NCBI GenBank assembly: GCA_002269645.1
Contig: NIVC01000818.1
Coordinates: 18,181-82,180 of the forward strand
Length of the DNA: 64,000 nt
Direction: 5' to 3'
Source of the DNA: Macrostomum lignano
Taxonomy: Eukaryota
A model generated the notes under the pieces. That model saw nothing but the letters and a program-made list of their open reading frames with translations, made no database searches and was not told the origin of the DNA. The position numbers and the translations under genes were made by a program. This document shows, piece after piece, positions 18,287-61,514 of the stretch. How positions within the stretch are numbered: position 1 is the first letter of the stretch; each line of letters opens with the position of its first letter.

Positions 18287-19043
18287 ATGCAGCGCTCCGT
18301 GCACCTGACTGCCCTCCTATCCGTGCCTCTGGCCCTGCTGTTCCTGGTGGCGATGAGTCAGCCAAGTGTGCTGCATCACGGATACATCGGCTGCTTTGTT
18401 GATGGTGACAACAGCAACAGAGATTTGAAAGGCCTGGCTGGGTTGAAGACCATCGGGCCTTTCACCGATAAGATAGAGTTCGCCTACTTTTTCAATGGAT
18501 ACACCGTCACCATCGAGAGCTGCAGCAGCCTCTGCGCCCTGGGCAGATTTCGCTACTTCGGTCTGCAGGCGCAAGGCTTCTGCTTCTGCGGCAACAGCTA
18601 CGGACTGCACGGAGCCGCTTCATCAGATTCTGAGTGTAACGAAGACTGCACTGGAAACAGCAGCCAGAAGTGCGGCGGTCAAAGTAGAAACTCCATTTAT
18701 GAGAACATCTATGCGCCCGGTAAGAACATTTTCGGGTCTTTTGGCTAACAATTCCTGCATCAACATTTTTCTGCATTTGTGCTGCTGCTCAGAGACCGGC
18801 CTCTTCAAGCGCGTGGCCTCAACCAAGTCGATGCTCACCACCGCGCCCGGACAGCCAGAGAACAGCACCTACTGGAGCCAGGAGGCCACGGGAGTCTTCG
18901 AGTGCGCCGCCGCCTGCCACCGCAGCCCGGACTGCCTCGCCTGCGCCTTCGTGCAGTCCAGCCGGATGTGCCGCCTCATGAGATTCGCCGCTGTGCCCAG
19001 CGAGGTCGCCAGCGAGGCCCAGTGGGTCTGGATGAAGCCGTGA
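18287..19043 (+). CDS. Secreted WSC-PAN/Apple protein A1; exons 18287-18719, 18793-19043 (227 aa)
   Basis: Hydrophobic signal peptide; WSC signature YIGCFVD...SCSSLC..GRFRYFGLQ...CFCG...C...C.G.....CGG..RNSIY with 8 Cys; phase-1 gtaag..cag intron; exon 2 has PAN core CAAACHRSPDCLACAF...C. Confidence 0.9.
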
Positions 19044-19656
19044 GCCTGACGGTCAATAAAGCAAGCGGAAACAGGAAGTACGAGCCAAGTGATATTCAAC
19101 CTGATATTCGGAACCAAGCTTAACTTCTTGAAACAGCTGACGTACCGTAGGGGATCAGCAATCTGAGTAAAACAAATGAAAATAGTTCACCAATCCAACT
19201 CAACCTGGTTTGCACGACGCACTTTTACGCCGCATCCTGCGCGCTAAAAGCGAGCAAATAAATTCCCCCACGCGACTGCGACCCATGCAATTACTGAATT
19301 GGGAGGCTTTTATGAAATCTTCAATGGATTTAATGGCGCCGGAAACTTCTTAAGCCTTTAATGCCGCATTGAAGGGATTAAAAGCTTCTTGGTCAAGAAA
19401 ATTACTTTCGATTTACATGTAGAAGCACTTTTAAACTAAAACTAAAGAGCTTTATTCACAGTTTTTGTGAATCATTTTCAAATAAAGGTACGATATATTT
19501 CATTTAAAACATGTACATGTATGTATCGATTTTCCAGGAATATATTGATTCTTCCTAAAAAAAGTATCTTTTACCTTGGGCTTTAGCACCAGGCGCCAGC
19601 ACCAGGGGCGCCAGCCCCATTTGCGTCAGAACCAAGAGGCGCCAGCAATAGGGGTA

Positions 19657-20226
19657 CCAGCACCAGAGGCGCCAGCACCAGAGGCGCCAGCACCAGAGGC
19701 GCCAGCACCAGAGGCGCCAGCACCAGAGGCGCCAGCACCAGAGGCGCCAGCACCAGAGGCGCCAGCACCAGAGGCGCCAGCACCAGAGGCGCCAGCACCA
19801 GAGGCGCCAGCACCAGAGGCGCCAGCACCAGAGGCGCCAGCACCAGAGGCGCCAGCACCAGAGGCGCCAGCACCAGAGGCGCCAGCACCAGAGGCGCCAG
19901 CACCAGAGGCGCCAGCACCAGAGGCGCCAGCACCAGAGGCGCCAGCACCAGAGGCGCCAGCACCAGAGGCGCCAGCACCAGAGGCGCCAGCACCAGAGGC
20001 GCCAGCACCAGAGGCGCCAGCACCAGAGGCGCCAGCACCAGAGGCGCCAGCACCAGAGGCGCCAGCACCAGAGGCGCCAGCACCAGAGGCGCCAGCACCA
20101 GAGGCGCCAGCACCAGAGGCGCCAGCACCAGAGGCGCCAGCACCAGAGGCGCCAGCACCAGAGGCGCCAGCACCAGAGGCGCAGCACCAGAGGCGCCAGC
20201 ACCAGAGGCGCCAGCACCAGAGGCGT
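19657..20226. repeat. 15-bp minisatellite (gcaccagaggcgcca)n, about 38 nearly perfect copies
   Basis: Directly visible; degenerate precursor units at about 19585-19650. Confidence 0.97.
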
Positions 20227-21039
20227 CAGTTCAATTGTTTAAATTTTTTAATGAACAAATTGAGTTGTTGAGTTGAACAAATTTTTAATGAAGCAACTCA
20301 ATTAATCCATTTTGACTTTCAGCAACTAGAACGTTGAAAAAACTGATAAATGGCCATAACTTTTAGGGTTTTAAATTATAACTTCAAAAGCGCCAGAGGT
20401 CGACCTTGCGAATTCCGTGAATCTTGTGAAACAGCCTCCAACAGAGGACGTACAATCGAGTTGAATGTTTTTTGCAACTAAAACCAAATTCTAATGAAAT
20501 GGAAACGGTTTGAGTTGTTCCTGTGTTTTTACACTATTACGACATTGTTTGTCACTTTGAAATGATACTGGATGAATAGACCCCAATCGCATGATTTCAG
20601 TCCAGAATATGGTTTCTAAACTTTATGACTTGCAGTCAACCCCCCTCACTAGGGATTTTTTAAAACACAAAAACTCCCAACCCCCACTTTTACCCGACCT
20701 AAGAGTTGGGGAGGATCGAATGAAGAGAGTCAAAGGATGCTGCCAGAGCCACTGCTACCCAGAACGGATCAATGATGCGGTGGGCATTTTTTCACGATTT
20801 TAAACTTCCTAGCTTCAGCGGCTCAGGAATTACAAAGCAACTTCCTTGCCTCGGCTACCATTGTTCTCTCCTGAAAGCGCTGCTTTGAATAGCGACGGCT
20901 GCCTCTACGTGCTCTGAACTTTTTACCATTGTCCGAAACTCTTTCACTGAATTCACCCGAACCCCAACCGGACGGACTCGAAATGGGGGGAAGGACATGG
21001 CGCTGCATGTCAAAGCGACATCGGACCCGCAGCCACGCA

Positions 21040-21288
21040 CCCGCAGCCGACAGCTCAGCCGCAGCTATTGCGCGGCGCATCTGAAGGCTGCGTACGGCTG
21101 TTCAGTCCAAGGACTGGCGGGTCGCCACACACACCCTCAATTACCCCAGCTAATGCTGGCACCCATTTTACAGCTGAGTGAACTGAAGCAATGCAGAGAG
21201 TTAAGTATCCGCTCAAGGAAAAATTGCCAAGAATCGAACCCCCGACCTTTAGGTCGCGAGTCCGACGCTCTAACCACTAGGCTACAAC
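21040..21288 (-). mobile_element. tRNA-derived SINE family 2 with CORE-like central domain
   Basis: Head tgtagcctagtggttagagcgtcggactcgcg...ggttcgattc (A and B boxes), then ccttgagcggatacttaactctctg...ctcagctgtaaaatggg resembling the MIR/CORE consensus; tail shared with 44921-45085. Confidence 0.7.
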
Positions 21289-22103: not shown

Positions 22104-22412
22104 AATAATTTTTTTATTGCCCCCCTTTAAGTGGAGCGGAGTGAGTTTTCTTATCAGTTGGCTCTGGCGCAATCAATTAAAATTGGCAGTGAAGTTTCTG
22201 GCTGATAAAATTTGCATTGAAAAAGGCCATTTAAAACAGTTTTTCGAATATTTAATCCCTTTAGTATTGAAGCAGATACAAGAAATTTTAACTGTCTTCT
22301 TTCCAGACAATTTTGAATCTTTTGGCGAAAACGCGATCAAAATCGGTGAAGAATTGCAATCTGTAGAGCGTTATGGACATACAAATATTAGAGATTTAGT
22401 ATATTTAGAAGA
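22104..22412 (-). mobile_element. Short Helitron-like unit abutting copy 2
   Basis: Minus-strand TC start at 22412 with an AT-rich tcttctaaatatactaaa end like the larger element; related hairpin (gctccacttaaaggggggc) near 22120-22138; CTAG not preserved. Confidence 0.45.
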
Positions 22413-25400
22413 CTAGCAATCAGCGCCCCCCGTTGGGGAGCCAAAAAAATGCAGTACAAGTTTTTTTTAATAAACTACATGTAAGCGTCTCTTTGCATTA
22501 TACCTTGTAAGCCTTGACATGTCAGAAAATCCCCCCACAAGCCTTAGCATATCAACCCCCTTGACGTCTTAGCAATGCCCCATAAGCCTTGCAATCTTAA
22601 AAAATCTGTCAACCTTCTAACCCTAGCCCTAGCCTAACCCTAGCCCTAACCCTAACCCTAACCCTAACCCTAACCCTAAAGCATTGACATTTCAGTAATT
22701 CTCTCTAACAGTCATTATAGCACTACTACAGCATTAAAGCGATTCCTTGCAAGCCTCGACATCGTAGGGATTCCCAAATGAATCTCTTAACTTCGACATG
22801 AAGCTTCTTTTATTTTTTACATTACGCTTTTTCTATCAGCGATCCCTCCCGTGAGGAGCCAACAAATAAAGAAAAAAAGTTTTCAATGGACTACATGTAG
22901 CTTCTGACTTTAGCCTTGAAATCTCATTTATTCCCCATGAGCCTTGACATCTCAGCTATTCCCCCGTAAGCCTTGACATGTCAGCAATGCCCCCATAAAC
23001 CTTGATATCTGAAAAATCCCCTGTTAACCTTGAAACCCGATAAAATATAACCCTCAACCCACACCTGACCTAAACCTAACTTTAACCCAACCTAAAGCCT
23101 TGAAATCTCAGCAATTCTTCTCCCCTAAGCCTTGAAATTTTAGTGATTCTTTCTTCAAGAAACACAGCACTATAGCGATTCCCTCCAAGCCTTGACATCG
23201 TAGCAATTCCCAAATGAATCTTTTAACTTCGACATGACTCTTCTTTTATGTATACATAGTGCTTCTTTTCTTTTTTACATGACTCTTCTTCTATCAGCGC
23301 CCCCCCCCGTGGCGAGCCAACAAAGAATGTAATAAAAAAATTGAGTAAAGTACATGTACTTTGAAGTAGCTTCTGACTTTTGCTTTGACATCTCAGAAAC
23401 CCCCCCCCCCCCGCGTAATCTCAGTTATTCTCCGTGAGCCTTGACATCTAGCACAGTAAGTCTCCCCAGCGCAGCACAATAGCTTCATTTAATTTTTACA
23501 TGACACCTCTTTCATGTCTGACATTTTTTTGTCACTTGATTTTTGATGTCAGTATGATTTTTTTACATGACGCTTCTATGATTTTTTACATGACGCTTCT
23601 ATGATTTTTTACATGAAGCTTCTATGATTTTTTATATGACGCTTCTATGATTGCTTACGTGACGCTTCTATGATTTTTTACATGGCGCTTCTATGATTTT
23701 TACATGACGCTTCTATGATTGTTTACATGACGCTTCTATGATTTTTTACATGACGCTTCTATGATTTTTTACATGAAGCTTCTATGATTTTTTATATGAC
23801 GCTTCTATGATTGCTTACGTGACGCTTCTATGATTTTTTACATGACGCTTCTATGATTGTTTACATGACGCTTCTATGATTTTTTACATGACGCTTCTAT
23901 GATTTTTTACATGACGCTTCTATGATTTTTTACATGAAGCTTCTATGATTTTTTATATGACGCTTCTATGATTGCTTACGTGACGCTTCTATGATTTTTT
24001 ACATGGCGCTTCTATGATTTTTACATGACGCTTCTATGATTGTTTACATGACGCTTCTATGATTGTTTACATGACGCTTCTATGATGTTTTACATGACGC
24101 TTCTATGATATTTTACATGACGCTTCTATGATTTTTTCATGACGCTTTCATGATTTTTTACATTACGCTTCTATGATATTTTACATGACGCTTCTATGAT
24201 TTTTTACATGACGCTTCTATAATTTTGCATGACGCTTCTATGATTTCTTTATGACGCTTTCATGATTGTTTACATGACGCTTCTATGAATTTTTTACATG
24301 ACGCTTCTATGATTTTTTACATGACGCTTCTATGATTTTTTACATGACGCTTCTATGATTTTTTACATGGCGCTTCTATGATTTTTTACATGACGCTTTC
24401 AAGATTGTTTACATGACGCTTCTATGATATTTTACATGACGCTTCTATGATTGTTTACATGACGCTTCTATGATTTTTTACATGACGCTTCTATGATTTT
24501 TTATATGACGCTTCTTTGATTTTTTACATGACGCTTCTATGATTTTTTCATGACGCTTTCATGATTTTTTCATGACGCTTCTATGATTGTTTATATGACG
24601 CTTTCATGATTGTTTACATGACGCTTCTATGATTGTTTACATGACGCTTCTATGATTTTTTACATGACGCTTCTTTGATTTTTACATGACGCTTCTATGA
24701 TTTTTTACATGACGCTTCTATGATTGTTTACATGACGCTTCTATGATTTTTTACATGACGCTTCTATGATTGTTTACATGACGCTTCTATGATTTTTTAC
24801 ATGACGCTTCTATGATTTTTTACATGACGCTTCTATGATTGTTTACATGACGCTTCTATGATTTTTTACATGACGCTTCTATGATTGTTTACATGACGCT
24901 TCTATGATTTTTTACATGACGCTTCTATGATTTTTTACATGACGCTTCCATGATTTTTTACATGACGCTTCTATGATTTTTTCATGACGCTTCTATGATT
25001 TTTTCATGACGCTTCTATGATTTTTTCATGACGCTTTCATGATTGTTTACATGACGCTTCTATGATTTTTACATGACGCTTCTATGATTTTTTACATGAC
25101 GCTTCTATGCTTTTTTACCTGACGCCTTTTGTCCTTTATTTGTCCTTTAATAAAAGGTTTTAATAAAAAACTTTTCACTACTTAGATTCGAACCCAGGTC
25201 GCTGCATTTGCAGTCCAGTCTGTTCACTTCTAGGCTAGCTATTATCGAATTTATAAATTAAATTGTAGCACTTATATAATTCAACACTCACTCACGAATC
25301 AGTTATGACATAATCAATTTCCCAGGCAAGTCAGTATCAGTCTCAATTAAAGTTGAGAATATGGTTACGCAATCTAAATCAAGTCTGGTGCTACGCTTCC

Positions 25401-25732
25401 ACACTGCATTTTCAATACTGTGACGCAATTCAAGTCGGAGTTACAATTCAGTTATGATGCAATCTATTTCAGAATCAGAATTCAACCAGTCAATTTTTTT
25501 CTCTAGCATTATTACAATGCATTTCAAGTCGAAAAGTTTGCTTGACCTTTGCAAAAAAGCATGTTTTTCGAGTATTTAATGCCTTTAGCATCGAGCAATT
25601 TCTTAGCCAAGACACATGTACCGTCACGGGAAAATTTCTGATCGAACAGTGCAAGTCTCATGAAAATCGGTTAAGCCATTTTTTCTCTAATCGATTGCAA
25701 GCAAGCAAGATTTTCATTTTTAGTATATAGGA
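22413..25732 (-). mobile_element. Non-autonomous Helitron-like element, copy 2
   Basis: CTAG at 22413-22416 with hairpin gctccccaacggggggc; TC start at 25732; collinear with 4632-8279 including the CCCTAA tract, three hairpin-headed modules, minisatellite and tRNA-like piece. Confidence 0.75.
23553..25126. repeat. About 21-23-bp minisatellite (catgacgcttctatgatttttta)n internal to Helitron-like copy 2
   Basis: Directly visible. Confidence 0.97.
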
Positions 25733-27062: not shown

Positions 27063-27064
27063 AT

Positions 27065-27654: not shown

Positions 27655-28420
<766 letters not shown>

Positions 28421-29640: not shown

Positions 29641-30412
29641 ATGTTCCGCCCCGATCAGGCCCTCCTGCTGCTGCTGGTGCAGGGCTATTGTTGCTCAGGG
29701 CTTCTGCTGCCTCCGCAGCCGCTGGGCCATCAGTACCTTGGCTGCTACGTTGACGGAGGCAACGGGGACCGGGACCTGGTCGGCCTGAAAGGGGTCACTA
29801 CTTTGGGGCCCTACTCATATGACTCAGGAAACCCAGTCTTTGTCCGAGAAGAAAGTCTGACGCTGGAGATGTGCAGAGAAATCTGCTCCTACGGCCGCTT
29901 TCGCTACTTCGGTACCCAGAGCCGCGTTTTCTGCTGCTGCAGCTCGACCTACGGCTCGAAAGGCGTCGCCGCTGCCGCCGACTGCATCTACCCTTGCACA
30001 GGGAACACGTCTCAGGAGTGCGGCGGCGACTCAAGAAACTCCATCTATGAGTCTCTGTATCCACCGAGTGTGTTCTGCGCCAAGAACATTGTGATCCTCT
30101 CAATAAGTTAAACCAGTTTTTATCACAACGATTTAGACAACGTTTTAAACTCCTTCCTAATTTACAGTTGAACCGAAACTAATGAAAGTTCCCGTTGCTT
30201 CCATGCCGAGCATCGCAGCCTCCACCAGCTCCATCGTTTACCGCAGCGAGACGGCCGGAAGCGTCATCGAGTGTGCGGCCGCCTGCCACCGAAGCCCGGA
30301 CTGCCTCGCCTGCGCCTTCGTGCAGTCCAGCCGGATGTGCCGCCTCATGAGATTCGCCGCTGTGCCCAGCGACATCGCCAGCGAGGCCCAGTGGGTCTGG
30401 GTGAAGCCGTGA
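29641..30412 (+). CDS. Secreted WSC-PAN protein B1; exons 29641-30067, 30168-30412 (223 aa)
   Basis: Signal peptide; YLGCYVD...MCREICSYGRFRYFG...CGGDSRNSIY; phase-1 intron at the homologous position (weak donor gtgtgt, acceptor tttacag); PAN exon; tataaaaa about 85 bp upstream. Confidence 0.87.
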
Positions 30413-31294: not shown

Positions 31295-31829
31295 CCTGAG
31301 GATGTAGATGCTAATTACCTGAGGATCTGGATGCTAATTACCTGAGGATCTGGATGCTAATTACCTGAGGATCTAGATGCTAATTACCTGAGGATGTAGA
31401 TGCTAATTACCTGAGGATCTGGATGCTAATTACGTGAGGATGTAGATGCTAATTACCTGAGGATCTAGATGCTAATTACCTGAGGATCTAGATGCTAATT
31501 ACCTGAGGATCTAAATGCTGATTACCTGAGTATCCAGATGCTGATTACCTGAGGATCTAGATGCTAATTACCTGGGAATCTAGATGCTAATTATCTTAGG
31601 ATCTAGATGCTGAATACCTGAGGATCCAGATGCTAATTACCTGAGGATCTGGATGCTAATTACCTGAGGATCTGGATGCTTATTACCTGAGGATCTAGAT
31701 GCTTATTACCTGAGGATCTAGATGCTAATTACCTGAGGATCTGGATGCTAATTACCTGAGGATCTGGATGCTAATTACCTGAGGATCTGGATGCTTATTA
31801 CCTGAGGATCTAGATGCTAATTACCTGAG
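31295..31829. repeat. 23-bp minisatellite (cctgaggatctggatgctaatta)n, about 23 copies
   Basis: Directly visible. Confidence 0.96.
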
Positions 31830-32935: not shown

Positions 32936-33803
32936 ATGCATGCGGCTGCTTTCTCGCTGCTGCTGTTGCTCGTCAGCGGTGGCGGCTGCACCGTCGCAGT
33001 TCCTCCACAGCCGCTGGGGTTCAGCCACGTTGGCTGCTATGCGAATGGCGGCGGCGGCAACAAAGACTTGGCCGGACTTCTCGGACTCGTCTCGCTTGGA
33101 ATGTTTGCCAACCATGAGAACGTCCCTGCATTCGTGCGCACTGACAGCTCGATGACCCTGGAGCTGTGCAGCCAGATCTGCTCCTACGGCCGGTTTCGCT
33201 ACTTCTGCGTTCAGGGCAGGCACTTCTGTGGCTGCGACAACACGTTTGGCTCCCACGGTGCCGCTGCTCCGTCGGACTGCAGCGTGTCCTGCGGAGGAAA
33301 TGCGAGTCAGATTTGCGGTGGCTGGGGCTACAGCTCCATCTACGAAATCTCCTATGCTCCCGGTACGACGGTTGCTTTGAATAAGAAGAAACTATTTGCT
33401 AATAGTTATTTAACTTTAACGGATTGAATACAAGTACTATCTAACTTGCTATTGTGTTCGATGAAGATGTAACTTCTCATGCATTCAGATTAAAAGCTTA
33501 GCATTGGTCACCAGAATGCATGACAGCAGAAAGTCACTCAGCAACTTCTTTCACTCAACTTCACCCGCAGTCGGGTCCGTGTTGGAGCGAGTGGCCGCGT
33601 CTGCCATGCCGACCATCTCAGCCTCCGCCAGCTCCGTCATCTACTGGAGCCAGGAGGCCACGGTGGCCTTCGAGTGCCTCGCCGCCTGCCACCGCAGCCC
33701 GGACTGCCTCGCCTGCGCCTTCGTGCAGTCCAGCCGGATGTGCCGCCTCATGAAATTCGCCGCAGTGCCCAGCGAGGTCGCCAGCGAGGCCCAGTGGGTC
33801 TGA
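32936..33803 (+). CDS. Secreted WSC-PAN protein B2; exons 32936-33362, 33571-33803 (219 aa), last 4 residues lost to a TGG>TGA change
   Basis: Signal peptide; HVGCYAN...LCSQICSYGRFRYF...CGG; phase-1 gtacga..ccgcag intron; PAN exon; ancestral stop persists 12 nt downstream. Confidence 0.85.
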
Positions 33804-34455
33804 GTGAAGCCGTGAGCCTGTCGGCTGATAATCTGCCGTGGAGAAACAAACAGCTCTGAACCCAAAGCTCATTTTGTCTGCTTAAGGAAATGTTTGAACA
33901 ATTGGTTGAAGCAGCAGGTGGCCACAAAATATTGGCAGATTGAATTTGCAGTGCTGCCACAATACCAAGATCACAACACAACAGACGATAAGTGAATTAT
34001 GGCATCGCAAAACTCGAAGCAAAACTCGGCTGCCTACTGTTAATTATTTCTTCATATATCCGTTACAGACATGGAGTTACACTAGGCAGTTAGCTGTACA
34101 TATTGATCCAACTGATCTCAAATCCAAGTATCCAACAGGAAATGCACCGATCAGGGAAATGAGAGTTTTATTAGCAGAATCAGCGACTTGATCATGCAGC
34201 CTCTGGACTCAAAGCCCAACGTTATAGAAAACGCTGCTTGTTTCACAAATTCCGTTAATTTTTTGGGGACAGTTTACTGTAAATGCTTCTTTATGAAACC
34301 CTTGTCTAAGTTAATGAGTTATCAACCTGACATTGGCGCATTAAATCTTAAGAAATCGACTACACTACTATTTAGTAGCGAGATATGAATAGCAAATACA
34401 CTGTTGAAAATGCATCGAAAATTTAAAGCCAACTGTGCTTCTGCTCCTGCCTCCT

Positions 34456-36516: not shown

Positions 36517-37267
36517 ATGCAGCGCTCCGTGCACCTGACTGCCCTCCTATCCGTGCCTCTGGCTCTGCTGTTCCTGGTGGCGATGAGTCAGCCAAGTGTG
36601 CTGCATCACGGATACATCGGCTGCTTTGTTGACAGCAACAGCAATAGAGATTTGAAAGGCCTGACTGGGTTGAAGACAATTGGGCCTTTCACCGATAAGA
36701 TAAACTTGGCCTACTTTTACAATAAATACACCGTCACCATCGAGAGCTGCAGCAGCCTCTGCGCCCTGGGCAGATTTCGCTACTTCGGTCTGCAGGCGGG
36801 AGGCTTCTGCTTCTGCGGCAACAGCTACGGACTGCATGGAGCCGCTTCATCAGATTCTGAGTGTAACAAAAACTGCTATGGAAATAGCAGCCAGATTTGC
36901 GGCGGCTTCGGTAGAAACTCGGTGAGAACTTCTATGCGCCCGGTAAGAAAAGTTTGCTGTTCCTTTAGCTAAAAATTCCTGCATCTACATTTTTCTGCAT
37001 TTGTGCTGCTGCTCGGAGACCGGCCTCTTCAAGCGCGTGGCCTCAACCAAGTCGATGCTCACCACCGCGCCCGGACAGCCAGAGAACAGCACCTACTGGA
37101 GCCAGGAGGCCACGGTGGCCTTCGAGTGCCTCGCCGCCTGCCGCCACAGCCCGGACTGCCTCGCCTGCGCCTTCATGCAGTCCAGCCGGATGTGCCGCCT
37201 CCTGAGATTCGCCGCTGTGCCCGGCGAGATCGCCAGCGAGGCCCAGTGGGTCTGGGTGAAGCCGTGA
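36517..37267 (+). CDS. Secreted WSC-PAN protein A2; exons 36517-36942 (or 36921), 37019-37267; frameshift apparently compensated by an acceptor shift
   Basis: High identity to A1/A3/A4. Net 4-nt loss near 36921 makes the old donor phase 0; the ancestral acceptor AG is mutated to GG and the next AG (37017-37018) gives a phase-0 exon start. Could alternatively be a pseudogene. Confidence 0.65.
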
Positions 37268-38393
37268 GCCTATATGTGGACTGATAGTCTACCGTGGATA
37301 AACAAACATTGAACAGTTACCAGCGCAGAACACGAACCTACTAAAGCTTGTTTGTTTAAATGAACGAGAATTTGAAAAAAATGATAATTGAAGCAGCAGG
37401 AAGACCGGAACATTTGCGGTCACACTTTGAAATCATAACGCAAAACAACAAAATAATATAATAAACTCGATTATTTAGCTTTTATCGCATTGCAAAAATG
37501 TCTAATATTTTTTTTCTTCATCCACTAAAGTCTAAGTAGATATTAATCATTGATAACTTATCCTTGACCTTGATCAACCAAGTTGGTGCTGAAAATTCTG
37601 AAAAGTTCTGAGCGGTAGAAAAACACAGTGCGGGTTTTGCCAGCACAGATCTCGGATGCGCCATGGAATCGCGGAGTCTGCGAACTGACATCATCTGTTG
37701 ATTGACAACCATGTGTTTTATCGACCTTGGCTCCCCATCAATTTTCCAACCAGCATTCATTGCCATTGCCAAGGTGAGCAGGTGCTCATCATGTGATTGT
37801 ATCCCTGGGTGAACCCCTCGTTATCTAAGCAGGCATCAGCCAGTTGTTGAACTCGAAATCGCGTCTGTCAGCGGAGATGCATGACCTTAAGAAGAGTTAT
37901 CAAGAGTACTAAAGCAGAAAAAGCAGCATAAGGCATAGGGAAAGTCTGACAGTCTTGTAACTTTCTGTGGCCTCTGGCACAACGCTAAGTCAGTCTTAGG
38001 AGTCTTGGTGGTAGCAGTGGTCCTAAGGACATGAAATCAAGAAATAGAAACCATTTTTCATAATGGGCACCACTCCAGTGGATCCACTTTGTTCTTTTTC
38101 TAGTGCAATGAATATATTTTACAAACTGATTGTCTACTTTCAGTAGCAAAATAAGCGGCAGATGGGTAGAAAATTTTACTATTGCAATTTTTGTACTTGC
38201 TTTATACTTATTTCACATAAGCAGAAGTCTCTTGCCCCAAATGCCAAAGTGTATAGAGGAACAGATTCTGCTGTAGTTGCACACAGCTTCTGTACAGAAT
38301 GCAAACTGGCAACTTGACTCTTGTTTGAGTAAGCCGTTCACCCATTGGTATTTATATTGTGAGAGTATTCTGCTTTTGTAATCTTTGTATTAA

Positions 38394-38632
38394 TTAGAGG
38401 CAAGGGGTTGTGTGCACCCTGGCGCACTTTAAGCGACATAGGCACACAACCGGCGAGAGGCATTACTGCCCATTCCGCCAACTCCCCTGAGTAGGCACAC
38501 AAGCGCGTGAATACGTACGCAGTCATACACACAGGCACTCACGCAGGAGTGTACAGCAGCCCTAACTTTATTAATAGTTAGGCATGTACACTTCACCTGT
38601 GCCTTGGGGGTTGACCGTCACGGGCGTTAATT
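38394..38632 (-). mobile_element. SINE family 1, head-truncated next to the DIRS/Ngaro remnant
   Basis: Same 3' end and body as 48002-48230; tRNA head absent. Confidence 0.75.
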
Positions 38633-43765: not shown

Positions 43766-44519
43766 ATGCAGCACTCCGTGCACCTGATTGTCCTCCTATC
43801 CGTGCCTCTGGCTCTGCTGTTCCTGGTGGCGATGAGTCAGCCAAGTGTGCTGCATCACGGATACATCGGCTGCTTTGTTGACAGCAGCAGCAATAGAGAT
43901 TTGAAAGGCCTGACTGGGTTGAAGACTATTGGACCTTTCACCGATAAGATAGAGTTCGCCTACTTTTTCAATGGATACACCGTCACCATCGAGAGCTGCA
44001 GCAGCCTCTGCGCCCTGGGCAGATTTCGCTACTTCGGTCTGCAGGCGGAAGCCTTCTGCTTCTGCGACAACAGTTACGGACTGCACGGAGCCGCTTCATC
44101 AGATTCTGAGTGTAACAAAGACTGCGTTGGAAACAGCAGCCAGATTTGCGGCGGCTTCGATAGGAGCTCCATTTATGAGAACTTCTATGCGCCCGGTAAG
44201 AAAAGTTTCCTGGTCATTTAGCTGACGATTCCTGCATCTGCATTTTCTCAATTTGTGCTGCTGCTCAGAGACCGGCCTCTTCAAGCGCGTGGCCTCAACC
44301 AAGTCGATGCTCACCACCGCGGCCGGACAGACAGAGAACAGCACCTACTGGAGCCAGGAGGCCACGGTGACCTTCGAGTGCCTCGCCGCCTGCCACCGCA
44401 GCCCGGACTGCCTCGCCTGCGCCTTCGTGCAGTCCAGCCGGATGTGCCGGCTCCTGAGATTCGCCGCTGTGCCCAGCGAGGTCGCCAGCGAGGCCCAGTG
44501 GGTCTGGGTGAAGCCGTGA
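43766..44519 (+). CDS. Secreted WSC-PAN protein A3; exons 43766-44195, 44269-44519 (226 aa)
   Basis: Intact signal peptide, 8-Cys WSC domain, phase-1 intron and PAN exon. Confidence 0.9.
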
Positions 44520-45307: not shown

Positions 45308-47250
45308 TGCATGCCTGGGTGAGCTCGAACTTGAGTCTGTCAGCTGACATGCATGCCTGGGTGAACTCAAACTTGAGTCTGTCAGCTGACATGCATGCCT
45401 GGGTGAGCTCGAACTTGAGTCTGTCAGCTGACATGCATGCCTGGGTGAGCTCGAACTTGAGTCTGTCAGCTGACATGCATGCCTGGGTGAGCTCGAACTT
45501 GAGTCTGTCAGCTGACATGCATGCCTGGGTGAGCTCGAACTTGAGTCTGTCAGCTGACATGCATGCCTGGGTGAGCTCAAACTTGAGTCTGTCAGCTGAC
45601 ATGCTTGCCTGCGTGAGCTCGAACTTGAGTCTGTCAGCTGACATGCATGCCTGGGTGAGCTCGAACTTGAGTCTGTCAGCTGACATGCTTGCCTGCGTGA
45701 GCTCGAACTTGAGTCTGTCAGCTGACATGCATGCCTGGGTGAGCTCGAACTTGAGTCTGTCAGCTGACATGCATGCCTGGGTGAGCTCGAACTTGAGTCT
45801 GTCAGCTGACATGCATGCCTGGGTGAGCTCAAACTTGAGTCTGTCAGCTGACATGCTTGCCTGCGTGAGCTCGAACTTGAGTCTGTCAGCTGACATGCAT
45901 GCCTGGGTGAGCTCGAACTTGAGTCTGTCAGCTGACATGCATGCCTGGGTGAGCTCGAACTTGAGTCTGTCAGCTGACATGCTTGCCTGCGTGAGCTCGA
46001 ACTTGAGTCTGTCAGCTGACATGCATGCCTGGGTGAGCTCGAACTTGAGTCTGTCAGCTGACATGCTTGCCTGCGTGAGCTCGAACTTGAGTCTGTCAGC
46101 TGACATGCATGCCTGGGTGAGCTCGAACTTGAGTCTGTCAGCTGACATGCATGCCTGGGTGAGCTCGAACTTGAGTCTGTCAGCTGACATGCATGCCTGG
46201 GTGAGCTCGAACTTGAGTCTGTCAGCTGACATGCTTGCCTGCGTGAGCTCGAACTTGAGTCTGTCAGCTGACATGCATGCCTGGGTGAGCTCGAACTTGA
46301 GTCTGTCAGCTGACATGCATGCCTGGGTGAGCTCGAACTTGAGTCTGTCAGCTGACATGCATGCCTGGGTGAGCTCGAACTTGAGTCTGTCAGCTGACAT
46401 GCATGCCTGGGTGAGCTCGAACTTGAGTCTGTCAGCTGACATGCATGCCTGGGTGAGCTCGAACTTGAGTCTGTCAGCTGACATGCTTGCCTGCGTGAGC
46501 TCGAACTTGAGTCTGTCAGCTGACATGCATGCCTGGGTGAGCTCGAACTTGAGTCTGTCAGCTGACATGCATGCCTGGGTGAGCTCGAACTTGAGTCTGT
46601 CAGCTGACATGCATGCCTGGGTGAGCTCGAACTTGAGTCTGTCAGCTGACATGCATGCCTGGGTGAGCTCGAACTTGAGTCTGTCAGCTGACATGCATGC
46701 CTGGGTGAGCTCGAACTTGAGTCTGTCAGCTGACATGCATGCCTGGGTGAGCTCGAACTTGAGTCTGTCAGCTGACATGCATGCCTGGGTGAGCTCGAAC
46801 TTGAGTCTGTCAGCTGACATGCATGCCTGGGTGAGCTCGAACTTGAGTCTGTCAGCTGACATGCATGCCTGGGTGAGCTCGAACTTGAGTCTGTCAGCTG
46901 ACATGCATGCCTGGGTGAGCTCGAACTTGAGTCTGTCAGCTGACATGCATGCCTGGGTGAGCTCGAACTTGAGTCTGTCAGCTGACATGCATGCCTGGGT
47001 GAGCTCGAACTTGAGTCTGTCAGCTGACATGCATGCCTGGGTGAGCTCGAACTTGAGTCTGTCAGCTGACATGCATGCCTGGGTGAGCTCGAACTTGAGT
47101 CTGTCAGCTGACATGCATGCCTGGGTGAACTCGAACTTGAGTCTGTCAGCTGACATGCATGCCTGGGTGAACTCGAACTTGAGTCTGTCAGCTGACATGC
47201 ATGCCTGGGTGAGCTCGAACTTGAGTCTGTCAGCTGACATGCATGCCTGG
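45308..47250. repeat. 42-bp minisatellite (gcatgcctgggtgagctcgaacttgagtctgtcagctgacat)n, about 46 copies
   Basis: Directly visible; degenerate monomer at 37849-37886 in the paralogue; source of the two 681-aa ORFs. Confidence 0.97.
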
Positions 47251-48001
47251 TAAGACAAGTTTAGAAAGCGTAGAAAAAACAGGAAAGAAGCTGAAAAGCT
47301 GCAATGCTTTTGTTTCAATAGACCATCTTCGTTGCTGATGAGAATCTGCTGCCTTTGCTGCTCCAGCCCTGACTGCTTTTTGGCTGAACTTCTAAATCCA
47401 CGATTGGGGAGACTTGTTGCTGAGAGTTGTGGGGAACACTGTGCTTCCCAGTGACTGAAGCGAGCGATTCCCTGCGGCGTTGGGAACGTTCTGACAGTCT
47501 TGCGACTCTCCGCGGCTTCTCTCAGTCAGTCCTTAGGACTCTTAGCTGTAGTCAGGAAATAGAAAAAAACATTTTTTTCTATTATTGACGCCAGTGAATC
47601 AACTTTATTCTTCTTCTACAGTAAAGAATACATTTAAAAAACTTAGTAGCTACTTTCAGTAGCAAAATAAGAGTCAGACGGGGTAGAAACTTTTATTGGT
47701 GCAATTTTTGTACTTACAGCATAGTTCACGAAGTGTAACAACCTGCTGTACAGGGGAGATTCTGCTGCACAGTTTTGGGGTCATCGTGTGGTTGATGCAC
47801 ACAAATTATGTGCAGAGTGCAATTGTGTCTGAATCTGTTTGAATCAAGCATGCTTTTTGCAATCAGTGTTGAATCAGTTCAGTTACAGTAGTCAACTAAG
47901 AACAGGCAAAGAACGCATTTACAAACTACTTTAAGTAATCAATTAAGCGCTTTCTTAACAGATTTCATGTTAAAATTCTGCTGTTGAACTCTTTGTTATA
48001 G

Positions 48002-48346
48002 TTAGAGGCAAGGGGCTGTGTGCACCCTGGCGCACTTTAACGACATAGGCACACAAAGAGGCATTACTGCCCATTCCGCCGACTCCCCTGAGCAGGCATA
48101 CAAGCGTGCGGATACGCCCAGGCACACACTCACACAGGAGTGTACAGCGGCCCTAACTTTATTAATCGTTAGGCATGTACACTTCACTTTGCCTTGGGGG
48201 TTGGCCCTCAGGGGTATCAATTGCACGAGCAGAGCCAAGTCGAGATTCCAACTTGGCCCAAGATGAATGTGACTGCACTTGGAATCGAGCCTGGGCCGCT
48301 GGCACGCGAGAGCGGCCGTGATAGACCACTGAGGCTACGGTCCCCC
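48002..48346 (-). mobile_element. SINE family 1, full-length copy
   Basis: Head ccgtagcctcagtggtctatcacggccgctctcgcgtgccagcggcccaggctcgattcc (A and B boxes), body, and 3' end ccccttgcctctaa. Confidence 0.8.
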
Positions 48347-49227: not shown

Positions 49228-50192
49228 GCTATTGCACTCGATTGGTGCCTAAGCTGCAGACTATTGCACTCCATTGGTGCCTAAGCTGCAGACTATTGCA
49301 CTCCATTGGTGTCTAAGCTGCAGACTATTGCACTCCATTGGTGCCTAAGCTGCAGACTATTGCACTCCATTGGTGTCTAAGCTGCAGACTATTGCACTCC
49401 ATTGGTGCCTAAGCTGCAGGCTATTGCACTCCATTGGTGTCTAAGCTACAGGCTATTGCACTCCATTGGTGCTTAAGCTGCAGGCTATTGCACTCCATTG
49501 GTGCCTAAGCTGCAGGCTATCGCACTCCATTGGTGCCTAAGCTACAGGCTATTGCACTCCATTGGTGCTTAAGCTGCAGACTATTGCACTCCATTGGTGC
49601 CTAAGCTGCAGGCTATTGCACTCCATTGGTGTCTAAGCTACAGGCTATTGCACTCCATTGGTGCTTAAGCTGCAGGCTATTGCACTCCATTGGTGCCTAA
49701 GCTGCAGGCTATCGCACTCCATTGGTGCCTAATCTACAGGCTATTGCACTCCATTGGTGCCTAAGCTGCAGACTATTGCACTCGATTGGTGTCTAAGCTG
49801 CAGACTATTGCACTCGATTGGTGCCTAAGCTACAGGCTATTGCACTCCATTGGTGTCTAAGCTGCAGGCTATCGCACTCCATTGGTGCCTAAGCTGCACG
49901 CTATTGCACTCGATTGGTGCCTAAGCTGCAGACTATTGCACTCGATTGGTGTCTAAGCTGCAGACTATTGCACTCCATTGGTGCCTAAGCTGCAGGCTAT
50001 TGCACTCCATTGGTGTCTAAGCTGCAGGCTATTGCACTCGATTGGTGCCTAAGCTGCAGGCTATTGCACTCGATTGGTGCCTAAGCTGCAGGCTATCGCA
50101 CTCCATTGGTGCCTAAGCTGCAGGCTATCGCACTCCATTGGTGCCTAAGCTACAGGCTATTGCACTCGATTGGTTCCTAAGCTACAGGCTAT
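49228..50192. repeat. 32-bp minisatellite (ctattgcactccattggtgcctaagctgcaga)n, about 30 copies, ending at the start codon of WSC-PAN C
   Basis: Period 32 (49261 to 49293); the last unit merges into ggctATGcag. Confidence 0.96.
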
Positions 50193-52501
50193 GCAGCTGA
50201 CGTTCCAGAAACTGCTGGCAGCTCTGCTGTCACTTGTCAGCCTGCTGGTGTCGGCCCAGCTGGTAGTCAAGTCCGTCAACTACATCGGCTGCTTCGTTGA
50301 CCTCAACGACAGCTCCAGGGACTTGACGGGCCTGTCGGGCATCACCCGGATTGGCCCCTTCAGCCAGATCAACCCCGCGGGGAGCCACCTGTTCCGCTTT
50401 GACATGACCATCGGCAGGTGCGTCAGGCTGTGCTCGCTCGGCCGGTTCAGGTACCTCGGCCTGCAGGCCACCGGCTTCTGCAGCTGCAGTCGGAGCCACG
50501 GCTCCCACGGGCCGGCCTCCGAGACCGAATGCAACCGGAACTGCACGGGCCATGCCAGACAAATCTGCGGCGGTCTGCTCAGGAATTCGATTTACGAACT
50601 GGCTTATAAAGACGGTGAGCGAGCGATGGACTCTGGATTGTTGAGCACAATTAAAAGCGAATCTTGAACAGCTCATTTCTACCACTAAGGATTAAATTGC
50701 TTGCTCCCAGGGACAGTTGGTTCGGAAGACTCTACAATCATGGGCAGCTGTTTAGATTGAAGCCCCATTGAAACGCACTAAATTTCCTACACTTCAAATT
50801 TGTGCTCAGCGAACAATGCTAGGAATTCCCATTGTGAAACAAACACGTCCTGCGACTTTATAAATCAATGTTAAATCAAGTGTAAACTTCAAACTTCAAA
50901 TAAATAGAGAGTCAAAATAAACAATCAATGTGGATAAAATTGTTTTAGACAATCTAAATGATAATTTGGACATTCAACATGAGACACGCATACAGCGAGC
51001 TGCAGCAGCTTGCTGGCAAACTGGTATTGGCCACGGAGTCCGTGGAGTCCGTGTTTGAGGCGGCATTCTGCTGCTGCTGTGTGTACGGTTTGCTGCTGCT
51101 GCTGGTGCGCGCGATGAGAGAAATTCTCATTTAGAATGGCTTTTTATCGATTAGATTGGCCACAGACTCTGTCCACGGAGCGAGCTGCCGCAGCCATAGA
51201 GCAGCCATTGGCCATAGAGTGTTTCTCGTTTTGAATGTCCAAATTATCATCTAGATTGTCAAAAACGATTGTGCACCACCCAGGAACTCCTCATATGGGC
51301 ATCGAATAGAGCAACACTCGTGCCATGCGCGTGTTAAGAAACTTTCAATTGACCTGGACCCAGGTGCCTTCCACATCTGGTGACTTTGGTTCAGACCAGA
51401 CTAATGTCACATCAAAGCCACGTCAGCCATATCTTCTCTTGGGCTCAGATCATAGACTAGACTCAAAAAGAACTCTTAGAATTGTTTGCTGAGCCAAGGA
51501 TCCGCCCTCGGCCTGATAAAAACGCATCCTCGGACTTTCTTTTCCATAGAACGATTAATTATCACGTGTGATCTATACTTCTAAACCGACAATATCTACC
51601 TCTAGTTGAAACATGGTTGATTCAAATCATGGGTTTCAACCATAGACAGTCTCCGCGGACCGCGAAATTACCACAAAAAGACTGCTGAAATAACAGTCAT
51701 TGTCTTTTCATTCTGCCAGCGGGCCCCAATTTTGCAGTCGGGCATCTGTGGCGTTTTCAGCTCACATTTTTAGTAGCCGTCTTTCCCCAATATAACTGTC
51801 GGTTGCTTCCTTTCACTCAAAGTAGATTGTTCTAGTCTGCCGTTCTCCAAGTTGGGTGTAGAAATCCAAGCCATGATAGACTCGAAGCAGCTGCGATTTG
51901 CATTTGTTGATCTGTCTCACAATGCATTCCATCGGAGCTTAAATTTTTAACTCTTCTTCTTCTTCTTCTCTTCTCTTGTTTCTCTTATTTACAGTCTCGA
52001 AACTTTGTCTATGGTCTGAATGTACGCCCCGACAGACGCTCAGCCCCACAGCCCAGCTAGCAGCGGTACAAATCTATGGTAAATATATGGAACCTCCTAT
52101 TTCCGTCCGCACAGAGGGGTAACACGGGCATGAACAATAAGTTCTTCAAGTAAACTACTGTATTTCTTAGGATGCATATTGCTGGGAATTACTTGCAGTT
52201 TTAGGGTATCCTGGATTGTCGTCAACAATAAAACAAAGCCTCTGGTATTTCAGCAACTGGCGGCTTCAAGACGCTGCCAGCAGCATCGCAGCCTCTGGTG
52301 TCTGACCCAGGATTCAGTGCCAGCACTCACTGGAGTCTGCCCGCCGCCGTGTCGCTCGAGTGCCTTGCCGCCTGCCACCGCAGCCCCAACTGCCTCGCCT
52401 GCGCTTTCGTGCAGTCCAGCCGGATGTGCCGGCTCCTGAGATTCGCCGCTGTTCCCAGCGAGGTCGCCAGCGAGGCCCAGTGGGTCTGGATGAAGCTGTG
52501 A
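50191..52501 (+). CDS. Secreted WSC-PAN protein C; exons 50191-50614, 52254-52501 (223 aa)
   Basis: Signal peptide MQLTFQKLLAALLSLVSLLVSA; YIGCFVD...CGGLLRNSIY; donor G|gtgagc, acceptor tatttcag, phase 1; PAN exon. Confidence 0.87.
50942..51266. mobile_element. MITE-like element with about 35-45-bp terminal inverted repeats in the intron of gene C
   Basis: ttttagacaatctaaatgataatttggacattcaa (about 50943) is the inverse of ttgaatgtccaaattatcatctagattgtcaaaaa (about 51231-51265); target-site duplication not resolved. Confidence 0.75.
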
Positions 52502-53264: not shown

Positions 53265-54357
53265 ATGTTGCATCCCTTGCTGCTCCTAGTACTAGCAGCC
53301 CTGAGCACAATGGCGAATGCTCAAGCAACAATTAGCCACTCAAACTACATCGGTTGCTATGTGGACGGGGACGACACCAGCCGAGACTTGACCGGCATGG
53401 CGCCGTTTTCCACCTTCGCGTCCACGAGCGTCGGGTCCGGCATTCTGTACAGGCCGGACATGACGGTGTCCATGTGCGGCAGGATCTGCGCTCTTGGCAG
53501 ATTTCGCTACTTCGCTCTACAGGCCACCGCCTTTTGCAGCTGCGATTCAACCTACGGCAGCCACGGATCCGCAGCCGAAGCCGACTGCTACCAGGACTGC
53601 GCTGGCAACGCGTCGGAGAAGTGCGGCGGACCCTACAGGAATTCCATCTACGAAAATGTCTACCAGCCTGGTACGAGCCCGCGTCTAGGAGGCTTTAAAG
53701 CCTTCTTTAAAGAAAACTAAAGCCTTAGCTGTTCTTTGTTGCGTAGCCACCTGAGTAGCTGAAGTCCCTCTGGGAAATCTTGAGAGGTCTAACTATGGCT
53801 GAAGAACTAAGTTCCCTGAATATATTCATAACAGAGTCGTGAACAAGGACTACATGTACTAAAGTAGAAGGACGCAACACTCAAAGTTCAGAAGCTCAGT
53901 GTCGTCATGACGTCAGCCGAAGCTTAGGGACGACTGGTCATGTACTCTGGAGGCAGTGCAAGACTGCGAAATACCGGTACGAGTACAGAAGAGACTCTAG
54001 ATGGCACGCGCACGTATCGTATTTGTAGAAAGAGCCTTTTTTATTTAAGACCAGAACGGCATGGTCCTCACTCCCCTACGCCGCATTTCTTCACTTACAG
54101 TCGGTTCAAAGTTCACCAAGGCCGCCTCGAGCTCCAACAGCATCGTGAAAAACGCAGGCCAGTCAATCCTGACCCACTGGAACGACACCTCGCCATCAGC
54201 CAACGGCCAAATTAAATGCGCGGCCACTTGCCAGCGCAACCCAACCTGCCTCGGATACGCCTTCGGGCAGTCCAGCCGCACCTGCTGGCTGACGACCTTC
54301 GCCTTGGCGCCCCCGATCGTCGCTGGCGAGTCGGCCTGGATCTGGATGAGGAACTGA
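53265..54357 (+). CDS. Secreted WSC-PAN protein D (divergent PAN); exons 53265-53670, 54101-54357 (220 aa)
   Basis: Signal peptide; YIGCYVD...MCGRICALGRFRYF...CGGPYRNSIY; phase-1 gtacga..ttacag intron; PAN CAATCQRNPTCLGYAF...C. Confidence 0.88.
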
Positions 54358-58769: not shown

Positions 58770-58896
58770 TGCTGTTGCAGTTTAGCAGCAACAGGGAAAT
58801 TTCACGGAGAACATCTGGCCTGGCCGCTTAAATGCAGTTGATGCTGACTTTGCAGCTCTTTTACTTTATTGGTTGCCAGGCCCTGATGCTGAAATG

Positions 58897-58910
58897 GTTG
58901 CTATGGAAAC
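58897..58910. promoter_or_regulatory. RFX X-box-like motif GTTGCTATGGAAAC upstream of WSC-PAN E
   Basis: Fits the X-box consensus; about 130 bp upstream of the minus-strand ATG, in otherwise non-homologous flank. Confidence 0.5.
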
Positions 58911-59803
58911 GATGCAGCTGTGCGTACAAGCCAGGCCCGTATGAGATATTTGCATCATCGAAGGCCAGTCCCAAGTTTCGGCCTTAATGAAATATGGGAG
59001 ACTTTTAAGTGGTGACAGCACCGGTGTGTGAATGCTTTATGAGCTGTCACTCATTTTCTTGCGAGCGTCATCAATATTTGACTTCAATCTCTCACTCTCA
59101 CACAGTCACTGACGTAAAAAATCGTGTGAACGTGCGTGATTTCGGACATTTTATACCGTACTTACAAGTCAGTAAGGTGGTGATTAACGTGCCTCAGTAA
59201 TTCTTTTATTACGAGTACTTTTCAACTTCAGCAAAATAATTTCGTCGCTTCTCTGCTCCAGTTTACATGCAGTTCCCAACGTATCATATTCAACCATCGC
59301 TATGAGCACACAAGCAACTTTGCGAGCAGCGGCTCTTGCAAACTTTTCTTTCTTCTTAACTTTTCTCCTAGAAGCTAGCTTTGATAATTCACTTTGCGAA
59401 GAAAAAGTGAATAAAATTGTCATACCTTGTTGGGGTTACAGCGGGAATTTTCGCAAACTGCCTTCTCACACGGCCATGCTCTCCACGAAGTGATAGTCGT
59501 TGTTCCGACAGAAGTCACGAGATGCTCAGCTTCCTACCAAAAAGCATCATTCACATGCGGAAGCAGAGCGGCGCTGCAACAGGAATTGAAGACTGCCTTC
59601 AGTTTGGATCGATCACAGTTTCTCACGTCTCCACAGCTTTTGTTAAAGCATCAGCTGCAGTGTTCCATTCTCAGTGAGCACTTCGCACCGGGCATGATCC
59701 GGTCTTGGAGCCGCTGCTCCGGAAGACAAGAGTTTGCAGCGGCAGGACGCGCGGCTTCCTCTTGGCTTGGTTTAGCTTAGTACCTGGCATATCAGCAGGC
59801 AGG

Positions 59804-60092
59804 TGCAATATTAGCAATCATGAATGCAATATCAGCAATCATGAATGCAATATCAGCAATCATGAATGCAATATTAGCAATCATGAATGCAATATCAGCA
59901 ATCATGAGTGCAATATCAGCAATCATGAATGCAATATTAGCAATCATGAATGCAATATCAGCAATCATGAATGCAATATCAGCAATCATGAATGCAATAT
60001 CAGCAATCATGAATGCAATATCAGCAATCATGAATGCAATATCAGCAATCATGAGTGCAATATCAGCAATCATGAATTCAATGTCAGCAATC
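59804..60092. repeat. 21-bp minisatellite (atcagcaatcatgaatgcaat)n, about 13-14 copies
   Basis: Directly visible. Confidence 0.95.
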
Positions 60093-60751
60093 GTAAAAAC
60101 TCTTTGTTTCGTAATTCTACTTTTTAGTGCTTCTGTGCTCAAAGCTTCCTAATGGGGTCTCGCTCAAGCAGAAGCTGTGAAACAATTTAGGAAAGAAGCA
60201 CCACATATCTGCTTTCACATGTATAGCTTGTATTAAAATATTGAGGCACTTTCGGTTTGATCTTACGATATGGAGAAGTATCTGATATATGCCTGGGTAA
60301 TTCTCGCATAAAATAAAACGAAATTGCTCTGATTACATCTACTACTGTTTCAGTAGCATAAGTCAGTTTTAGATGCTAAAAATAGGCGGCGAGTTTGATT
60401 TTCATTTTTCACCAATTCTAACTATAAGCTACCTTTTACGAGCTACTAAAATGTTAAGCAGCACAGCATCAGAGTCAGCCAATGCATTTTTTGCCAAAAG
60501 GTCAAACTCGTACTAATCTTGAAATCTCGATCTACATGCATTGTATTTGTTATATAGCTCGCACAGGCATTGAAGCAATGTAATCTATTAACTGGCTCAT
60601 ACCAAAGCAGAGAGGCAATAAATATAGTCTAGAAAATATATTAAATATTGTCAATATTCCATCGGATGTTGCGCCAAAGAGCAGCTACAGGTGTGCAGAG
60701 ACTTCATGCCTAGAGAATCTACCAAAATGATCAGCGACAGACCATCGCAGG

Positions 60752-61514
60752 TTACTCAGTGTACAGCTTCACCCAGACCCACTGGGCCTCGCTGGCGACC
60801 TCGCTGGGCACAGCGGCGAATCTCATGAGGCGGCACATCCGGCTGGACTGCACGAAGGCGCAGGCGAGGCAGTCCGGGCTTCGGTGGCAGGCGGCGAGAC
60901 ACTCGAAGGCCACCGTGGCCTCCTGGCTCCAGTAGGTGCTGTTCTCCGGCTGTCCGGGCGCGGTGGTGAGCATCGACTTGGTTGAGGCCACGCGCTTGAA
61001 GAGGCCGGTCTCTGAGCAGCAGCACAAATGCAGAAAAATGTAGATGCAGGAATTGTTAGCCAAAAGACCCGAAAATGTTCTTACCGGGCGCATAGATGTT
61101 CTCATAAATGGAGTTTCTACTTTGACCGCCGCACTTCTGGCTGCTGTTTCCAGTGCAGTCTTCGTTACACTCAGAATCTGATGGAGCGGCTCCGTGCAGT
61201 CCATAGCTGTTGCCGCAGAAGCAGAAGGCTCGTGCCTGCAGACCGAAGTAGCGAAATCTGCCCAGGGCGCAGAGGCTGCTGCAGCTCTCGATGGTGACGG
61301 TGGCCATATTGAAAAAGTAGGCGAACTCTATCTTATCGGTGAAAGGCCCGATGGTCTTCAGCCCAGTCAGGCCTTTCAAATCTCTATTGCTGTTGCTGTC
61401 AACAAAGCAGCCGATGTATCCGTGATGCAGCACACTTGGCTGACTCATCGCCACCAGGAACAGCAGGGCCAGAGGCACGGATAGGAGGACAATCAGGTGC
61501 ACGGAGCGCTGCAT
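60752..61514 (-). CDS. Secreted WSC-PAN protein A4; exons 61514-61085, 61011-60752 (229 aa)
   Basis: Inverted paralogue of A1-A3; intact splice sites, phase 1; C-terminus WVWVKLYTE. Confidence 0.9.

Follow-up and report, generated by a model that had tools for sequence, protein, structure and literature searches.

The stretch analyzed here, referred to below as the window, comprises 64,000 nucleotides (nt) of the Macrostomum lignano genome (assembly GCA_002269645.1, contig NIVC01000818.1, positions 18,181 to 82,180 of the forward strand) and contains a tandem cluster of nine genes, g1 to g9, each predicted to encode a small secreted protein that joins one WSC domain to one PAN domain. A tblastn search with the spliced g1 protein recovers nine WSC-PAN loci in the window, each as two blocks, and the coordinates 18287, 29641, 32936, 36517, 43766, 50191, and 53265 on the forward strand and 58769 and 61514 on the reverse strand are in every case ATG codons. 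The original prediction of nine two-exon genes at these positions, arising by tandem expansion of a WSC-PAN family, is therefore borne out, with spliced products of 219-229 amino acids (aa). A relaxed search with all nine proteins returned no further degenerate copies or fragments in the window at E below 0.1. The gene models, in window coordinates, are as follows.

18287-18719 and 18793-19043 (+): g1, WSC-PAN gene, 227 aa, 73-nt intron
29641-30067 and 30168-30412 (+): g2, WSC-PAN gene, 223 aa
32936-33362 and 33571-33803 (+): g3, WSC-PAN gene, 219 aa, feature extending to 33815
36517-36942 and 37019-37267 (+): g4, WSC-PAN gene, 224 aa
43766-44195 and 44269-44519 (+): g5, WSC-PAN gene, 226 aa, UniProt A0A1I8GV09
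50191-50614 and 52254-52501 (+): g6, WSC-PAN gene, 223 aa, 1.6-kb intron
53265-53670 and 54101-54357 (+): g7, WSC-PAN gene, most divergent copy, 220 aa
58769-58337 and 58267-58017 (-): g8, WSC-PAN gene, 227 aa, UniProt A0A1I8IH79, protein used for modeling
61514-61085 and 61011-60752 (-): g9, WSC-PAN gene, 229 aa, UniProt A0A1I8IHK9

Every residue of the g5, g8, and g9 models agrees with the M. lignano UniProt entries given in the list, which provides independent support for the splice models. The intron had been predicted to be phase 1 and to lie at the same position throughout. The position holds for all nine genes, each of which has its GT donor at the corresponding site, and the phase (one base into the codon) holds for eight; g4 departs from it. 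In g4, exon 1 has a 4-nt deletion close to its end, and the acceptor is mutated from CAG to CGG, so that the next AG, 2 nt downstream, must serve. The junction is phase 0, with a net change of -6 nt, and the open reading frame (ORF) remains open; the seven codons at the end of exon 1 are read in a shifted frame, and the final WSC strand is replaced by VRTSMRP. On this evidence g4 may be impaired. A further M. lignano protein model, UniProt A0A1I8FTG6 (P0005), has the same phase-0 junction (…SMRP followed directly by TGLFK…), and the deletion and acceptor shift are thus common to another genomic copy and are no one-off sequencing error.

Smaller changes mark some of the other copies. A TGG to TGA change four codons upstream of the ancestral stop codon (33813-33815) removes the last four residues of g3, and in g9 the ancestral stop is mutated, which adds a three-codon extension. 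The acceptor of g2 was picked by similarity to the paralogs P0008-P0010, and this model is the least certain among the nine. An AATAAA lies 12 nt 3' of the g1 stop codon. At g6, a 32-bp minisatellite of 30 copies (49228-50192) runs up to the start codon at 50191, so the 5' untranslated region and proximal promoter of this gene would consist of tandem repeats.

Profile and fold comparisons point to two modules in each protein, in line with the single WSC domain and single PAN core that had been proposed. The WSC domain (Pfam PF01822) scored 38-52 bits, above the cut-off of 27.8, in all six proteins scanned, and its eight Cys residues align in all nine copies. PAN_1 (PF00024) gave 18.8-23.3 bits against a cut-off of 21.4 and exceeded it in three of the same six. 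Two paralogs, P0178 and P0179, carry precomputed PF00024 hits, and the latter is named 'Apple domain-containing' in UniProt. Four PAN Cys residues are invariant, with an HGF-like spacing and the core pattern C-x3-C-x5-C-x11-C. When the family profile was compared with PDB sequences, it matched the WSC domains of Kremen1 (E 1e-11) and yeast Wsc1 (E 1e-8), and its C-terminal part matched the N (PAN) domain of HGF (E about 0.01).

An AlphaFold model of g8 built from 18 family sequences has a mean predicted local distance difference test score (pLDDT) of 82.9 and a predicted template modeling score of 0.77, with the PAN region at a pLDDT of ~95; it was used instead of a seven-sequence model, which gave a pLDDT of 49. 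Foldseek comparison of this model with the PDB returned Kremen1 and Wsc1 first (E 5e-6; target-normalized template modeling score of 0.77 for Wsc1, 7pz2), followed by the apple domains of factor XI and prekallikrein, the HGF N domain, and the apple-domain lectin SML-2, with probabilities of 0.9-1.0 for the best PAN-type matches. The PAN assignment is thus supported by the fold search, and the model has the expected two-core-disulfide PAN fold, in which a helix is pinned to a sheet. In the g8 model, the sequence that follows the intron is structured from about residue 149, so exon 2 would encode the whole PAN domain and the intron would mark the domain boundary. According to the published Wsc1 structure (PMC9024836), the WSC domain also has a PAN fold, around which a long loop is wrapped, and the family protein can thus be described as a tandem of two PAN-fold modules.

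A Kyte-Doolittle scan finds an N-terminal hydrophobic stretch at about residues 4-25 in all nine proteins. By the same heuristic, nothing past the leader rises above 1.2 in any of them, and no transmembrane or glycosylphosphatidylinositol-like tail is seen. This pattern fits soluble, secreted proteins, as originally predicted. Most copies contain a fifth Cys in the PAN core ('DCLACAF', for example within g1 residues 176-198, window ~18885-18960) that is absent from g7 and from distant paralogs. The total number of Cys residues is 13 in g1, g4, g5, g6, and g9; as this number is odd, one thiol may be free and open to an intermolecular disulfide.

The nine copies do not tell one history along their length. 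Exon 1 sorts them into five groups, namely (g1, g4, g5, g9), (g2, g3), and the solitary g6, g7, and g8, and within the recent group of g1, g4, g5, and g9 this exon is 86-95% identical at the nucleotide level. Between groups, the WSC exon is 45-62% identical and saturated at synonymous sites (synonymous divergence, dS, above 1), the first part of exon 2 is as diverged or more so (32-56% identity), and the 3' flanks cannot be aligned. In contrast, eight of the nine copies share 82-97% identity, with a dS of 0.03-0.39, over the final 174 nt of the coding sequence, g7 being the sole copy whose PAN block is not homogenized. The difference in identity between the WSC exon and this block gives Fisher p values of 1e-10 to 1e-28. 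The block encodes the disulfide-bonded PAN core and the C-terminus, ends within a few bases of the stop codon, and has sharp boundaries on both sides. Comparison of identity and dS places the homogenized blocks as follows.

18870-19043 (+): homogenized 174-nt PAN block of g1
30239-30412 (+): equivalent 174-nt PAN block
33642-33815 (+): equivalent 174-nt PAN block
37094-37267 (+): equivalent 174-nt PAN block
44346-44519 (+): equivalent 174-nt PAN block
52328-52501 (+): equivalent 174-nt PAN block
58190-58017 (-): equivalent 174-nt PAN block
60934-60761 (-): equivalent 174-nt PAN block

Selection on the protein is by itself insufficient to account for the identity of the block, because Mlig013640.g1, an unlinked single-copy paralog on contig NIVC01000038.1, keeps the PAN protein (nonsynonymous divergence, dN, about 0.23 from the cluster) yet has an ordinary dS of 0.54-0.98. 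The GC content at third codon positions (GC3) is 0.89-0.96 in the block; most copies have 0.66-0.73 in their WSC exon, and the value for the unlinked paralog is 0.78. Such an elevation is as expected under GC-biased gene conversion. The few informative sites within the block group physical neighbors (g1 with g2; g4 with g5 and g6; g6 with g8 and g9), not exon-1 relatives, and the block copies differ at 48 of the 174 positions in a mosaic pattern common to neighbors. The paralogs are far closer to one another at synonymous sites in this one tract than in its flanks, and the tract is incongruent with the rest of the gene, which is the pattern that defines concerted evolution. The strong similarity of the PAN cores is, on these comparisons, attributable to gene conversion and not to conservation alone. 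We conclude that repeated local gene conversion, together with purifying selection on the protein, appears to homogenize the PAN core, and that the WSC domain and the N-terminal part of PAN, encoded by the first third of exon 2, have been left to diverge. Among the recent copies, dN/dS of the WSC exon is 0.47-0.76, which is high, yet alone is no evidence of positive selection; between subfamilies dN stays far below dS. Gene conversion is common, and so are lineage-specific tandem arrays of genes for secreted lectin-like proteins; it is the domain-limited pattern of the conversion that is noteworthy and new.

An exhaustive HMMER search of 1.84 billion representatives gave 7,952 hits, a large number because WSC is widespread, and the single-unit hits of ~210 aa that span both domains all came from M. 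lignano. A profile search of a 5.8-billion-sequence set again placed full-length relatives in M. lignano alone, and matches to a hidden Markov model of the PAN part of the family were limited to this species among the 176 sequences fetched. The top non-flatworm hits are multi-WSC proteins lacking PAN, from oysters (including the 'putative fungistatic metabolite' K1QKY9), an annelid, fungi, and a diplonemid. Ten long multi-WSC hits were scanned for a WSC-PAN adjacency outside Macrostomum, and one of them (P0149, a metagenome contig) had PAN_4 after WSC, at a sub-threshold 24.3 bits against a cut-off of 27. The architecture was thus not seen outside Macrostomum in the databases searched, which may not include transcriptomes of other Macrostomum species, and we refrain from calling it species-specific. 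The unlinked paralog Mlig013640.g1 has the same phase-1 intron, and the gene structure is therefore older than the cluster. The suggestion that this minimal architecture is not a named family also held: no named or characterized family of secreted proteins with one WSC and one PAN turned up in the protein databases or the literature, and the full-length M. lignano relatives bear automatic names, 'WSC domain-containing' or 'Apple domain-containing'.

WSC and PAN modules serve in the binding of carbohydrates and of other proteins. Each protein of the cluster would accordingly be a soluble two-module binder, in which, judging only from the evolutionary pattern, the diversified WSC head would recognize differing glycan or protein ligands and the constant PAN module would dock to one shared partner or matrix. 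The site of action would be a secretory gland. Prostate and seminal fluid are the most likely location because WSC proteins form the largest recognizable class among M. lignano prostate-limited transcripts, although the analysis that leads there is indirect and we rate this location at somewhat below an even chance. An in situ screen identified 76 prostate-limited seminal-fluid candidate transcripts in this species (PMC5977470), and by our own count of its Table S1 at least 20 of these (up to ~27) have WSC-type best hits. Among the candidates, RNA815_17071.1, 32421, and 17183 have a suitable length and hits to oyster 'plasminogen' or 'fungistatic' proteins. One M. lignano prostate transcript has two WSC domains, and sperm compete less well after knock-down of the WSC candidate Mlig-pro46 (PMC6953679). 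Of the three roles first proposed (pattern-recognition lectin, mucus or adhesion component, and reproductive secretion), the reproductive one gains indirect support from these findings. The supplements of positional RNA sequencing work mention WSC for RNA815_80.4 only.

The explanation that we favor overall, and to which we give about an even chance, is that the cluster is a lineage-specific (Macrostomum) tandem family of small secreted proteins within the WSC and PAN superfamilies, evolving as a mosaic and acting as two-module binders in the secretion of a gland, most probably the prostate. A more specific version of this account is attractive but, in our estimate, doubtful: the genes may constitute a modular recognition system in which a 'variable' WSC head is combined with a 'constant' PAN module, kept uniform by domain-limited conversion so that it docks to one shared partner, such as a receptor or matrix in the reproductive tract of the mate, and the proteins would then be flatworm-specific seminal-fluid effectors shaped by sexual conflict.

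Several observations weigh against the favored explanation. None of 18 published seminal-fluid RNA interference (RNAi) primer pairs, which cover 18 of the 76 published prostate candidates, matches the window (36 primers, up to 4 mismatches); the sole hit is an isolated pro60 reverse primer with 4 mismatches at 32128, outside any gene. Primers of the known WSC candidates encode WSC starts of the 'GCY(L/F)HS' type and the window genes have 'GC(F/Y)VD', which makes them a different subfamily. PAN_1 is borderline by Pfam score, four copies have no canonical poly(A) signal within 250 nt, g4 is possibly impaired, and g3 is slightly truncated. That the head is variable and the dock constant in function is read from the evolutionary pattern, and the expression, localization, and ligand binding of the nine genes are predictions. 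Separately, the exact g8 protein is not on record in public assemblies, and no mention of the Mlig identifiers of the paralogs was found in literature text and supplements.

Other roles and origins have to be set beside a gland-secreted binder. The proteins could be innate-immune or pattern-recognition lectins of the epidermis, gut, or parenchyma, with WSC heads that bind beta-glucans or other microbial glycans. Binding of beta-1,3-glucan by WSC domains is known from a secreted fungal lectin that has three of them (PMC9024836), the PAN/apple lectin SML-2 is among the fold matches, and tandem expansion, diversification of one domain, and a dN/dS in the range seen for the recent copies are typical of recognition genes. 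The tissue information for M. lignano WSC proteins in the literature searched, however, points to the prostate only, and no immune-challenge data were found there; we regard an immune role as unlikely. Rather improbable, in our view, is a structural or adhesive role, with the proteins released as gland products (mucus, rhabdites, cement or shell glands, or adhesive organs) and crosslinked into a matrix through their PAN domain. Small, secreted, cysteine-rich proteins would suit such a role, and the extra 'CLAC' Cys, which accompanies the odd Cys number of most copies, could form the intermolecular disulfide, but the proteins are without repetitive or low-complexity structural regions, and a full-text search for Macrostomum and WSC returned reproductive work only, with none on adhesion.

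The remaining alternatives question the sequences themselves, and both appear very unlikely to us. The sharp block boundaries would be compatible with a nucleotide-level element (a structured RNA or a small-RNA target) or with an assembly artifact in place of gene conversion. The predicted RNA fold of the block, however, is no more stable than that of shuffled sequence (z = 0.11) and has no Rfam match, and neither an element nor an artifact sits well with the positions that still differ in a mosaic common to neighbors, the diverged synonymous sites of the unlinked paralog, or the elevated GC3 expected of biased gene conversion. As to the copies being mostly decaying duplicates without current function in a repeat-rich region, the two lesions of g4, the premature stop of g3, the lost stop of g9, the minisatellite that abuts the g6 start codon, and the abundance of satellites and repeats in the region would all agree with it. 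Against decay, each of the nine genes retains an open reading frame and intact splice sites, all eight WSC Cys residues are kept, dN remains well below dS between subfamilies, and conservation of the PAN protein reaches unlinked paralogs.

The DNA around the cluster contains unrelated genes and many repeats. Upstream, at 10424-14129 (+), lies an unrelated neighbor with an ankyrin-repeat ORF (10424-10957) and the halves of a protein kinase domain (12432-13190 and 13569-14129), and a 33-nt coding minisatellite (NKDLKPSDES repeats) is located at 12471-12748. Between the kinase gene and g1, a 221-aa ORF at 15962-16627 (+) ends in an acidic tail (…EGEGEEGEFEFVEEGDEE) and gave no convincing match in Pfam. 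An AT-rich repeat of ~3.3 kb is present twice, at 4631-8279 and 22412-25732, with about 88-90% identity between the copies; each opens with a short telomere-like (CCCTAA)n run (4855-4933 and 22617-22678), then a 29-30-mer repeat, and then a long 23-mer satellite array. The intergenic space is mostly minisatellite arrays with periods of 15-48 bp (1-1447, 2123-3363, 19591-20229, 31295-31829, 45308-47250, 62972-63772, and others), one example being a 42-mer present in 46 copies at 98% identity. Two adjacent ORFs at 39464-40384 (+) contain a reverse-transcriptase-like motif (…IPKSDGSVRIIHDLS…), with no Pfam hit at E<=0.01, and are probably a retroelement fragment. A short dispersed repeat, about 85% identical among its three copies (11090-11414, 38367-38624, and 47975-48305), may be a small transposable element.

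M. lignano is among the main models in research on sexual selection in hermaphrodites. WSC proteins dominate its recognizable seminal-fluid candidates, yet we know of no account of any WSC family in this species at the domain or genome level. The cluster supplies a defined architecture, so far found in M. lignano alone, in nine paralogs whose distinct WSC exons allow them to be distinguished with probes or RNAi, and gene conversion confined to part of a single domain sets a homogenized module off from a diversifying one. If the genes prove to be expressed in the prostate, they would offer testable candidates for the way in which proteins of the ejaculate diversify; otherwise, the cluster would still illustrate mosaic concerted evolution of lectin-like genes in one lineage.

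The closest comparison is with the prostate-limited WSC candidates of the same species (Mlig-pro46, Mlig-pro5/RNA815_80.4, Mlig-pro63, and others; PMC5977470, PMC6953679, PMC4490696), which are likewise secreted WSC proteins and, like the window genes, multi-copy, with gene groups under one Mlig identifier and several.g numbers. They differ in several respects: the primers point to a separate WSC subfamily, two WSC domains occur in some of them, and a PAN domain is not reported for them. The WSC domains of Kremen1 and yeast Wsc1 share the eight-Cys domain and are the best sequence and fold matches to the family; the flatworm WSC differs by a ~30-residue insertion between the first Cys and the helix, modeled as a beta-hairpin. 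The family does not belong to the Wsc sensors, Kremen, or the WSCD proteins. Kringle, CUB, and transmembrane segments as in Kremen were not found, Pfam giving WSC and PAN only. A fungal Wsc-type sensor would have the Ser/Thr-rich stalk, transmembrane segment, and cytoplasmic tail of Wsc1, whereas here no hydrophobic segment follows the leader and the protein ends right after PAN. WSCD1 and WSCD2 are type II membrane proteins with two WSC domains and a sulfotransferase, and the flatworm proteins have one WSC and no sulfotransferase hit.

Among systems built on the same modules, the fungal copper-radical oxidases (PDB 9n3u, 6ryv/6stx) also use WSC or PAN as N-terminal accessory binding modules but carry a large catalytic domain, and the flatworm proteins carry none. 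The HGF N domain, the factor XI and prekallikrein apple domains, Sarcocystis SML-2, and Toxoplasma MIC4 share the PAN core Cys pattern; their sequence similarity to the family is borderline, and the lectins and the apple disc have two to four such domains, as compared with the single one fused after WSC here. Serendipita indica WSC3 (SiWsc3), which binds beta-1,3-glucan, and the oyster 'putative fungistatic metabolite' proteins (K1QKY9 and relatives), which are among the top non-flatworm hits, are soluble, secreted WSC proteins alike. These multi-WSC lectins have 3-7 tandem WSC domains and no PAN, whereas the flatworm family combines one WSC with one PAN.

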